From assembly GCF_016432865.1 (NCBI RefSeq), contig NC_067398.1, forward strand, positions 725,772,001-725,836,000: a stretch of DNA of 64,000 nucleotides. The letters are read 5' to 3'. This stretch comes from Antechinus flavipes (taxonomy: Eukaryota). This document shows positions 6,501-53,908 of this stretch, in pieces. The position numbers and the translations under genes were made by a program. Under the pieces are notes generated by a model, which made no database searches, had not been told where the DNA came from, and was given only the letters and a program-made list of their open reading frames with translations. The stretch's first letter is position 1, and the number at the start of each line of letters is the position of its first letter.

Positions 6501-9500
6501 AGCCTTCCTTCCTTGACCGGTTTGTGGGCCAGGGCCGGCAGAGTCCGGTGTCTGCCAGTCCTCAGGCATGGGAGCAAGCAGAGCAGGGCAGCCAGGACAG
6601 GGAGGGGCCTGCGGACCCTCTGCTGAAGGCCGGGGGAGGCCGGGGGAGCACGGCCCCTGCCCTGTCTGCCTTCAGACGGCCTCGTGCTGACCGGAGAGCT
6701 GGCCCTGGCACCGCGGAGGAGCGGGGGAAGCCGTCCTCCCCGTGGGGGCCATGCCGCAGTGGTCGGCCCTCGGAAGCTGGCCGAGCACCCACAAAGGCCA
6801 CCCTTTTGTGGCCCGATTCTGGGTCGGGTCCGAACCTGGCTCAGAGCGACCCGAATCCCCAACTTCCCACGTTGGCCTGAATGAGCTCACTTGTCTCTGG
6901 TGTTTTAGGAGTCGGTGACCTTCAGTGACGTGGCCGTGGACTTCACCCTGGAGGAGTGGGGGTGCTTGTGCCCCCCTCAGAAGGAGATGTACCGCGAGGT
7001 CATGCTTGAGAACTATAGGAACCTGGTCTGCCTGGGTGAGGACCCTGACTGCCCCCGGAGGGCTGACTTCCCTCTCCCAGGGAATGGTCCCGGGCCGCCG
7101 AAGCTTGCCTGCCAGGGTGGTCCCTGAGGCCGCCCCTCCTCCTCAGGCCCAGGATCCCCTTGGTCTTCCCAGGAATAGCAGGAGTTGACAGCCTCTCTCA
7201 GAGCCGGACCCCCCTCCCCGGGGTCCAGGGTCCCATCCCTGCTCCCCGCTTTCGGGGCCATCGTCCCCAGCATCCTTCCCCGCCTCGGCTGGATCTCTCA
7301 GAGCCAGACCCTCCCCGGGGTCCAGGGTCCCATCCCTGCTCCCCACTTTTGGGCCATTGTCCCCAGCATCCTTCCCCGCCTCGGCTGGATCTCTCAGAGC
7401 GAGGAAGGGATTACACCCGAGTCACCATCTTTGTGTTTTCATTTGACAGGCCTGGCCATGACCAAGCCAGACGTGATCTCCCGGCTGGAGAGAGGGGAGG
7501 CCCCGGGGGCGCCAGGGGGAGACCTCGGCAGTGCAGGTGAGACTGGGCCCTGGGTCGTGGCCCCCAGAGCCCTGGGTGTGTTTCTCGGGGGCCCGTGCGG
7601 AATGGCGTTCCCGCTGGATCCCTAGATTCTTGACTCGGTCTGGATTGCGAAGAACGTGCGGGGTTATGGATCCAGCGCAGTCCGGTGGGGTCAGTGACCA
7701 GCGGTCCAGGAGACAGGGTCAGCGTGCAGGAGCTCTCCAGCGGGGCTGCCCTGGAGGTCTCTCGGAATCAGGCCTGAAGTAATGGTTATCGGTGCCGTGG
7801 AGGAAGCCATTGATCACCAGCTGCTCAGGTGGTCCGGAGCTCGGGCGAATGGCTGACTTGCTGGGAGTCAGTCTGGCTCCTGGAGCCTAGCAGGTCAGCG
7901 CATCGGGGTCAGGTCTCAGGGCACATAGAATTGTCATGTGACTAGACCCTCGCGATGGAGAGAAGACGCCAGGAGCCCGTCACTGACCCCTCGTTTTTGG
8001 ACACGTCCTGCACTTGCACCTGCTCTCTGACTCCATTGCTGCAGCAGAGGCGGCGTGATCCCTCCCCTTTCACAGCAGCTCGTTAAAGGTTGGAACAGCT
8101 CTCAGGAAGGAATCCTTCCTTCAGTGGATCCCAAGTGACGTGCTCCCAAGACCCTTCCACAGCCTGGTGGTACTCCTCTGGATGCTCCATCTTGTCATTT
8201 TTTCTTCCCAGTTTAGGGGTCCCAGAATTGGTCCTGGTTAGGGAAGGAGATGGTGGCGGCTGTCCCCTTCCCTGTTCTGCCCCCTGAAACCCCTGGAGGC
8301 AGGGTCCCCCCGCAGCAGTGTTCAGTGCTCCCGTGTCCAGCTCCCTAAAGCCCCAACATCCTTTTCAGGGACATCCTTCAGCCCCATTTCCCTCATCCTT
8401 CCCTTCCAAAGTTGGGGTTTGGAGCCAGCTATGCAGTTGCCCCCAGTACTAGTGATTCCCCATAGTGCCCCCTTCCAGGCATTGTTACCTGAAATCCAGG
8501 TTCACAAGGCAGAAGCAACCTGGCCTGCAGGTCCCGGAGCTCTGGGAAAGAGGACCAAGACCAGCCTGGTCCTCAAGCCGTCCTCCACCAGGTCTCAAAG
8601 GCATTTGGGGGAAATGGGGCTGTTTGGTCCTTGCCTAGTCTTGGGCCCCTTCAGGAGCTGGTGACTCAGGAAGTGGCTGAAACCAAAGTCCGCAGTGCCC
8701 AGAGTGGATAGATAAGGGTGAGGGACAGGACCGGCTCAGGAGGAGAACTGAGAGGACCCCCAGGAGTCCACCCCTCCCCTGGACCCCCCAGCCCTACCTG
8801 CCCCATCTAAGGGGCAGCCCTGCTGTGGCTCAGTACCCTGCAGCTTTCACCCTTGTGGACTTGGATCAAACAGAAGTGGAGCCCACATGGGCTCCTGGGC
8901 TGCTGCCGGCCCTCACGGGCACAGCCTCTGTCCTCCCGAGCTCAGGGACCGTGGAAGGGAGCTGTATTTGCAGTCCTGTTTGCTTGTAGCCGTTGTCTCT
9001 GCAGTTAGTCCGGTGCTTCCTGAGGACAGGGGCTGCCTTTTTTTTGCCTTTATTTGCCTCAGCACTTAACACAATGCCTGGCATGTAGTAGGTGCTTAAT
9101 AAGTGCTTTTAGAGAAACTTCTGGCCATCCTTTTTCTGGCTCAGGACTCAGAAGACAGGTCTGAGAAAGTAGGAGTTACCTTTCTTCCAACTGAGAAAAC
9201 AGCAGCTTTTATACTTTTTTTTCCCAGATTGGGGAACAGAGTCTGGTGTCGAAGAGTCAGCTCCAAAGCTTGGTACTTTTCTGGAAAAATCAACCTTGGA
9301 GCAACTCACAAGGGGTCATTTGTATGTGTCCCAGTGGGAAGAAGCTTCAGAACATGATGTCAGGTAGGAGGGAGGAAAACGGTCCTCTGTACTATTTAAT
9401 GTCACGTTTATCAGAGTATATGTGTGTGTGTGTGTGTGTGTGTGTGTGTGTGTGTGTGTGTCTGTGATTTTGTGTGCATTTATACATAACAACATGTATG

Positions 9501-52800: not shown

Positions 52801-53908
52801 TTCTACCACAACCAACTCATTTTGCAAACTGTTTAAATTAGCTTCCAAGAAAAGAATTGACTAGCCCATGTCGCCATGAATTTGAACCCTGACCTTCGAG
52901 CTCCAGATCCTGCAGTCTTTCCTTAAACACTACAACCCTGAAAGTATAATTCACAACTTATTTAACAAAATAGAATACATGTTAACAGGAAACCTAATGA
53001 AAATCAATGAGTCTTTGATTCACAGCTCCTCTATTCCTCCTCACAGGACTCGTCCTGGAGAGAAGCCCCTTAAATGTAGTGAATGTGGGATGACCTTCTG
53101 CCACAACTCGCAGCTTTCCCGGCACCAGAGAATCCACACGGGAGAGAAGCCGTACGAGTGCACGGAGTGTGGAAAGGCCTTCAGTCGGAACACGCAGCTC
53201 TCCCGACATCGGAAGATCCACACGGGGGAGAAGCCGCACGGGTGCGACGAGTGCGGGAAGGCCTTCCGGGAGAGCAAGCAGCTCTCTCGGCACCAGAGGA
53301 CGCACACCGGGGAGAAGCCCTACGGGTGTGGTGAATGTGGGAAGAGCTTCAGCAGGAGCACGGGACTCGCCGAGCACCAGAGGATCCACACAGGGGAGAA
53401 GCCCTACGAGTGTAGGGAGTGCGGGAAGGCCTTCCGGGAGAGCAAGCAGCTCACTCGGCACCAGCGGATCCACACCGAGGAGAAGCCCTACGGGTGCGAT
53501 GAGTGCGGGAAGGCCTTCCGCTGGAGGACGGAGCTTACTTCCCATCGAAGGATCCACACTGGAGAGAAGCCGTACGAGTGCCGCGAGTGTGGGAAGGCCT
53601 TCCGCCTGAGCGCCCACCTCATCCAGCATCAGAGCATCCACACCGGAGAGAAGCCTTACGAGTGCAAGGAGTGTGGGAAGGCCTTCCGCTGGGTCACGGG
53701 GCTGACCTCCCACCACAGGATCCACACGGGAGAGAAGCCCTACGAGTGCAGCATCTGTGGGAAGGCCTTCCGATGGAGAACGGTTCTGACTTCCCACCAC
53801 AGGATCCACACGGGAGAGAAGCCATTTGAGTGTGGTGAATGCGGGAAGGCTTTCCGCCTGAGCAAACATCTTATTCAACATCAGAGAATACACAGTGAAG
53901 CCTTTTGA
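49722..53908 (+). CDS. KRAB-like C2H2 zinc finger gene D (5' partial); join(49722..49848,50274..50360,52133..52304,53047..53908)
   Basis: Degenerate KRAB-A ([10 protein letters not shown]), shortened KRAB-B, spacer exon with GC donor, 10-finger exon; 1248 nt in frame; start exon not identified. Confidence 0.7.
50274..50360 (+). CDS. Gene D KRAB-B exon ([29 protein letters not shown])
   Basis: Acceptor TTTTCAATGAGCAG| identical to the gene C KRAB-B acceptor; EAPW motif; CAG|GTGAGT. Confidence 0.8.
52133..52304 (+). CDS. Gene D spacer exon ([21 protein letters not shown]...EDKPLR)
   Basis: TTGTTTCCAG| acceptor in phase 1; GAG|GCAAGT GC-type donor in phase 2. Confidence 0.72.
52600..52680 (-). 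mobile_element. MIR inside the gene D intronised spacer
   Basis: ATTCCCATTTTACAGATAAGGAAACTGAG. Confidence 0.8.
53047..53908 (+). CDS. Gene D zinc-finger exon: 10 C2H2 fingers
   Basis: ORF 52979..53908; acceptor CTCCTCTATTCCTCCTCACAG| at 53046 in phase 2. Confidence 0.92.

Follow-up and report, generated by a model that had tools for sequence, protein, structure and literature searches.

An apparently old intron within the former terminal exon of a marsupial KRAB zinc-finger gene subfamily

In KRAB zinc-finger (KRAB-ZNF) genes, the canonical layout places KRAB on one or two exons and the spacer together with the fingers on a single one, and extra coding introns of placental genes are regarded as gains (Kordis 2011, PMC3257199). 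Here we analysed a stretch of 64,000 nucleotides (nt) of the Antechinus flavipes genome (contig NC_067398.1, positions 725,772,001 to 725,836,000; hereafter the window), which contains four tandem KRAB-ZNF genes, A to D, all on the plus strand, with finger arrays at 11.6-13.1, 22.3-23.8, 36.8-38.0 and 53.1-53.9 kilobases (kb). In genes A, B and D, the spacer is separated from the fingers by a predicted intron that consists of former coding sequence and has both splice sites built from codons, and the same split lies at the homologous position in three koala copies. We consider it probable that this intron originated once, from codons of the terminal exon, before the duplication that produced A, B and D and before the koala split, and that the copies decayed separately afterwards.

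The spacer exons end in phase 2 at 9363 (..GTCAG|GTAGGA) in A, 22004 (..TCGAG|GTAAGT) in B and 52304 (..TTGAG|GCAAGT, a GC donor) in D, and the finger exons start at 11539, 22322 and 53047, each preceded by a pyrimidine tract that ends in CACAG. The CAC-AG(A/G) at the acceptor corresponds to the His-Arg of a decayed finger (..FNHSSxxxxHHR|IHTGEKP). When the KRAB-A, KRAB-B, spacer and finger exons are joined, stop-free open reading frames of 665 (A), 644 (B) and 415 (D) codons result; read-through of the donor is closed after 1, 1 and 3 codons (AGG TAG, AGG TAA and AGG CAA GTT TAA, respectively). The finger frame is open for just 7-54 codons 5' of the proposed acceptors, and because it is closed shortly upstream of each array, the canonical single exon of spacer plus fingers cannot be read in A, B or D and was not found there. 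The coordinates and sequence statements for the three genes, including the stops reached within 1-3 codons, had been given in an initial annotation made from the letters alone, and all of them hold on re-reading of the sequence, as do its proposals that the terminal exon is split with a decayed finger as the 3' splice site and that splicing would rebuild the Arg codon and the full array. It had also regarded the spacer exon as an extra exon. The phase-2 ends stand, but the acceptor at which the exon opens is the one that leads into the terminal exon of canonical marsupial genes (..PDW../..DGE..), and the spacer exon is therefore the 5' portion of that terminal exon in its ancestral form.

The splice pairing in A, B and D is beyond chance, as it combines a unique strong donor, the best tract and matching phase. 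Within the spacer open reading frame of each gene, the proposed donor is the sole GT or GC that scores above 2 bits on a simple donor matrix, and, ranked against every GT of the window, the three donors belong to the best 1-2%, on a level with the bona fide donors of the KRAB exons. Of the permitted AGs in each gene, the proposed acceptor follows the best pyrimidine tract, and in A it is the sole AG. Pyrimidines account for 16 (A), 14 (B) and 16 (D) of the 18 nt before the AG, compared with a mean of 10.2 (standard deviation 1.1, maximum 13) for the same count in 57 intact fingers of the window. The possibility that a CACAG acceptor is an ordinary property of fingers was rejected: AGA or AGG occupies that codon in 38 of the 57 fingers, and none of them has the pyrimidine tract. 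The donor of D, like those of the three koala copies, has GC at +1/+2 within an otherwise near-perfect consensus (AG|GCAAGT), as in GC-AG introns, and the donors of A and B are GT.

The initial annotation had recognized decayed spacer sequence in the introns, and our searches agree. With a canonical spacer protein as query, tblastn matched positions 11054-11179 of the gene A intron and 52391-52507 of the gene D intron, in both cases with stops, and the 317-nt intron of gene B is composed throughout of spacer and two decayed fingers and can be aligned over its full extent with two koala introns that also read as spacer. The length of the gene A intron (2,175 nt) is due to old interspersed repeats (9682-9977 and 10693-10998), copies of which are 69-78% alike; also present in this intron are a (GT)n run and, at 11484-11538, a frameshifted finger whose end is formed by the pyrimidine tract and CACAG. 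In the gene D intron, a MIR-like repeat at about 52590-52720 is common to koala, and the tail of a decayed finger ends in the tract and CACAG. Two properties of an intronised exon are present, namely competent signals at both ends with a frame-preserving join and an interior homologous to coding sequence of relatives. The interior of an exitron, by definition, is free of stops, and read-through closes in every copy, after 6, 13 and 54 codons in koala; because of these internal stops the exitron definition fails, and intronisation fits. In a canonical relative from Dromiciops (locus L004), which together with koala (loci L001 and L002) made up the DNA comparison, the spacer, first finger and array occupy one stretch, bar one frameshift in an A7 run, with no donor at the equivalent site and 9 pyrimidines of 18 in the finger tail.

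The koala copies place the split in a wider context. The koala RefSeq protein XP_078007986 (P0122) matches the genome exactly only if L001 30101-30272 is joined to the sequence from 30582 on, with removal of a 309-nt GC-AG intron (TATAG|GCAAGT .. CTCACAG|G) homologous to the A, B and D junction; we assume that this intron in the model is based on transcript alignments. A second koala gene, on the opposite strand of L001 and annotated with a product of 685 amino acids, has a like layout (TCTAG|GCAAGT, a 346-nt intron and CTTCACAG|A). At the gene D locus, window 43-58 kb has its colinear orthologue in koala L002, which has in common with gene D the spacer-exon acceptor, the GC donor, the intronic MIR-like repeat and the pyrimidine tract with CACAG. 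In all six copies (A, B and D plus three from koala), one codon of one particular finger provides the acceptor, with tracts of 14-16 pyrimidines in 18; the donor is at the same Arg of Arg-Gln-Val in five of the six, as GC (AG|GCAAGT) in four and GT in B. The donor of gene A lies 39 nt (13 codons) upstream of the site in B, D and koala, with phase 2 retained. Six of six spacer exons are open (44-57 codons), six of six introns close the frame, and the disabling lesions differ from copy to copy, none being shared. The ten-finger array of gene D is intact in Antechinus and koala, with equal length, the same stop, 90% identical protein and a ratio of nonsynonymous to synonymous substitution rates (dN/dS) of 0.026.

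Because the acceptor site is homologous in all six copies and the donor in five, we favour one origin before the koala split over the several events implied by the cluster-wide intronisation that had been suggested at first. Furthermore, because the lesions differ per copy and one koala copy can be read for 54 codons past the donor, splicing probably preceded decay, which argues against the earlier idea of a rescue of genes with decayed spacers. The proposal of a lineage-specific architecture survives in the sense of a marsupial subfamily, but the architecture is shared with koala and is already present in one automatic koala model.

Several local features of these introns and of the koala loci were also recorded. 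About 55 nt 3' of the gene A donor, a (GT)n microsatellite (9418-9462) occupies the expected region of the ancestral donor, and the old donor of gene A may have been lost to an insertion or to slippage at this point. In the gene D intron (window 52337-52470), about 46 nt (around 52322-52367) have no koala counterpart and look, by eye, like one unit of a tandem duplication of decayed spacer of roughly 60-70 nt (..attcaccagt[g/a]tcagtgggaaaggatctccataaatatgg..). The two inverted koala L001 genes have KRAB-B exons (7096-7191 on the minus strand and 28346-28441 on the plus strand) that are 97% identical in protein and spacer exons that are 57% identical, which suggests local gene conversion of the KRAB-B exon. 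Koala P0131 was considered as a second, spacer-skipping type of junction and rejected, as it reflects a plain genomic deletion inside one exon.

According to the account that we favour, A, B and D would form one marsupial KRAB-ZNF subfamily in which an intron arose within the normally single terminal exon of spacer and fingers. The 5' splice site would derive from the spacer codons Arg-Gln-Val (AG|GCAAGT) and the 3' splice site from the tail of the first finger, with Ser, Phe, Leu and Pro codons giving the pyrimidine tract and His-Arg giving CAC-AG. Splicing would join KRAB, a linker of 45-58 residues and the finger array in frame; on intron retention, translation of the window copies would stop 0-2 codons past the Arg and yield a short KRAB-plus-linker protein. 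In its first form the intron was probably of the GC-AG type, spliced alternatively in the manner of an exitron. Its interior would then have lost constraint copy by copy, as each acquired stops, frameshifts and repeat insertions of its own, and expression of the fingers would now depend on splicing. By parsimony, the ancestral donor sequence may be taken as AGG CAA GT. The TAA stop of gene B is one C-to-T change from the CAA of the four homologous GC donors, and this single change would have both replaced Gln CAA by TAA and made a perfect GT donor of the GC one. In gene A, the donor would have moved upstream by its 39 nt with preservation of phase 2. The gene A array has no in-frame ATG in 548 codons and therefore cannot be translated alone from an AUG.

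It is conceivable, although we are doubtful, that the arrangement has been kept for tens of millions of years as a regulated switch, in which a weak GC donor would let one gene make a full repressor when spliced and a stable KRAB-plus-linker protein when the intron is retained. A KRAB-only read-through product, as envisaged in the initial annotation, is plausible, given that koala XP_078008038 is such a model for the gene D orthologue. If such a switch exists, the stop of the retained form would lie in the last exon and escape nonsense-mediated decay, the form with KRAB alone would act on the co-repressor as a modulator, and an exitron-to-intron transition would be documented with its ancestral state still visible.

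A number of observations weigh against a single inherited intron that is still in use. Both the use of the junctions in this species and the order of events are inferred, and the donor ranks depend on a matrix that is an approximation. Only one full-length protein model with the split junction, XP_078007986 of koala, was found, in an incomplete survey whose word-indexed searches were swamped by generic zinc-finger matches, and its finger array is frameshifted; a profile of the three spacer exons gave 12 matches among proteins clustered at 50%, a figure that is not a census, as KRAB-ZNF proteins collapse into few clusters. The gene D exon at the KRAB-A position retains its 127 nt and frame and has no Pfam KRAB match, and the finger protein of gene D may have KRAB-B alone or no KRAB at all. 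The gene D spacer exon is 75.6% identical to koala and the intron 75.1%, with non-coding identity between the window and koala at roughly 71-75%, and the spacer dN/dS is 0.9, so that this exon evolves at the pace of the intron; only its open frame and single indel of 3 nt, set beside 11 indels in the intron (seven of them not multiples of three), suggest that the spacer exon is coding. Finally, koala RefSeq represents the gene D orthologue by two models, the read-through XP_078008038 (114 amino acids) and a separate one from the finger 1 Met.

These two koala models would be expected under gene fission, in which a KRAB-only protein and a separately started KRAB-less finger protein are made and the junctions are unused or minor. 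In Trichosurus, moreover, a KRAB-only model is followed 39 nt further on by a gene of 470 amino acids, and genes B and D, like the koala orthologue with its conserved residue, each have a Met in finger 1. We nevertheless regard fission as unlikely, because the gene A array is without any Met, a start at the finger 1 Met would deprive that finger of its two Cys, the PGEKPxxCxECG before this Met is conserved between gene D and koala, and the upstream in-frame ATGs of gene D are not present in koala. Fission also leaves unexplained the pyrimidine tract in six copies and the phase-2 donors that were kept even after the gene A donor had shifted. Independent, recurrent intronisation of each paralogue after decay of its spacer would accommodate the different donor site of gene A and the dissimilar lesions, and the Arg-Gln-Val codons are indeed a latent donor in many canonical spacers. 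The sharing of one acceptor codon by six of six copies and one donor Arg by five of six makes such repetition distinctly improbable, as does the occurrence of the layout in both the A-like and the D lineages of koala, which renders it older than the duplications. We give hardly any credence to the view that the genes are decaying pseudogenes and the introns an artefact of choosing frame-restoring GT..AG pairs. Damaged sequence always yields some such pairs, one koala copy has a frameshifted array and the KRAB-A of gene D is degenerate; however, the splice sites here are unique and strong rather than selected from many, the 17-18 intact fingers of A and B persist beside introns with old repeats, and the dN/dS of 0.026 of the gene D array, with the same ten fingers and stop in koala, indicates strong purifying selection. 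Pseudogene status is excluded for gene D by this ratio and is unlikely for A and B.

The gene models and their surroundings are listed in Table 1. The Pfam KRAB profile gives 79-87 bits on the KRAB-A exons of A, B and C, and these three genes, but not D, qualify as KRAB-C2H2 genes with KRAB-A on its own 127-nt exon. By motif scan and Pfam, A has 17 fingers, B 18, C about 12 and D 10, in tandem with TGEKP linkers on a large 3' exon. A spacer exon was looked for in gene C and none was found. A direct join of its KRAB-B exon (phase 1) to position 36772, where a degenerate finger provides an acceptor with 15 pyrimidines in 18, would give a full open reading frame with almost no linker; gene C was rejected as a fourth case of the split layout, because it lacks a spacer exon and its acceptor is different and in phase 1. 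Gene C ends at 38072, and the assembly gap follows in the stretch before the KRAB-A-position exon of gene D, about 1.2 kb upstream of that exon. It touches no claimed exon, intron or junction, and koala L002 is colinear with the window on both of its flanks; the first (ATG) exon of gene D could sit inside it. The koala model of the gene D orthologue begins at a Met within the exon that matches 49722-49848.

Table 1. Features of genes A to D and the assembly gap (window positions)
Feature	Position	Strand	Details
Gene A KRAB-A exon	6909..7035	+	127 nt, phase 0 to 1; Pfam KRAB 85 bits, splice sites
Gene A KRAB-B exon	7450..7536	+	87 nt
Gene A spacer exon	9228..9363	+	136 nt, donor CAG|GTAGGA, phase 2
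Gene A intron (predicted)	9364..11538	+	2175 nt
Gene A finger exon	11539..13186	+	17 Pfam zf-C2H2 matches, 548 codons
Gene B KRAB-A exon	17481..17607	+	Pfam
Gene B KRAB-B exon	17920..18015	+	96 nt
Gene B spacer exon	21830..22004	+	175 nt, donor GAG|GTAAGT, phase 2
Gene B intron (predicted)	22005..22321	+	317 nt
Gene B finger exon	22322..23858	+	18 fingers
Gene C, comparison gene	34098..38072	+	KRAB-A 34098-34224, KRAB-B 35626-35721 (phase 1)
Assembly gap (N)	48413..48542	none	Upstream of gene D KRAB-A exon
Gene D exon at KRAB-A position	49722..49848	+	127 nt
Gene D KRAB-B exon	50274..50360	+	87 nt
Gene D spacer exon	52133..52304	+	172 nt, GC donor GAG|GCAAGT, phase 2
Gene D intron (predicted)	52305..53046	+	742 nt
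Gene D finger exon	53047..53908	+	10 fingers

Further observations concern the composition of the locus. Just before the gene A KRAB-A exon, positions 3693-6117 are a minisatellite of 45.7 copies of a 53-bp unit, 95% alike, and the unit includes CCACCAGCCGGGGGC, which is similar to the CTCF core. The synonymous sites of the gene D array have shifted massively in this lineage (synonymous divergence, dS, about 2) with the protein 90% conserved. The GC content at third codon positions is 0.78 across the gene D finger exon (53047-53908) and up to 0.88 in mid-array, compared with 0.41 in the koala orthologue and 0.35-0.37 in A, B and C; the adjacent intron has 38% GC. Either biased gene conversion or conversion by a GC-rich copy might account for the shift. 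In koala, a model of 2,651 amino acids (L002 15801-25043) starts from the finger 1 Met of the gene D orthologue and runs off the locus end; it is probably chimeric.

A literature search found no published description of this marsupial layout. Intron gain in mammals is rare and its mechanism seldom visible, whereas the ancestral coding sequence, both splice sites and the later changes can be read here, and these changes (a donor-perfecting nonsense mutation, an in-phase slide of the donor and separate decay) lend themselves to comparison between paralogues and between two marsupial orders. In addition, such genes fall apart in annotation pipelines into a 'KRAB-only' and a 'finger-only' model, as happened in koala and Trichosurus, and counts of functional KRAB-ZNF repressors in marsupials would be distorted as a result.

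Several known systems are close to these genes. Kordis (2011, PMC3257199) reported intron gain in KRAB-ZNF and SCAN-ZNF genes, but of placental mammals and without such a mechanism, and argued against intronisation for the cases in that survey. Splicing within finger exons, in the form of exitrons, occurs in five human KRAB-ZNF genes (Marquez et al. 2015, PMC4484396); as in our genes, it takes place inside a large terminal exon and uses finger-coding splice sites. In contrast, those exitrons are stop-free and coding, whereas the window introns are closed 0-2 codons after the Arg, contain repeats, and would remove spacer and dead fingers rather than working fingers. GC-AG introns offer a parallel at the donor: AG|GCAAGT matches the consensus at every other position, as is usual for GC donors. 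Churbanov et al. (2008, PMC2490688) describe an enrichment of GC donors among alternatively spliced sites, which would suit a choice between retention and splicing at the predicted donor here. The model of intronisation through premature stops (Catania and Lynch 2008; Irimia et al. 2008, as presented in PMC4484396 and PMC3257199) shares with our case an intron from ancestral coding sequence, splice sites made of codons, internal stops and a preserved frame. It differs in that the lesions in our genes are unshared among paralogues, which suggests that splicing preceded the stops and did not serve as a rescue, and in that the intron is old (before the koala split), was duplicated with the gene and is mostly GC-AG, whereas the reported animal cases are mostly short or recent. 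The split of A, B and D appears to be an inherited gene structure of some age in which coding sequence was turned into an intron, a clear example but one with precedents.

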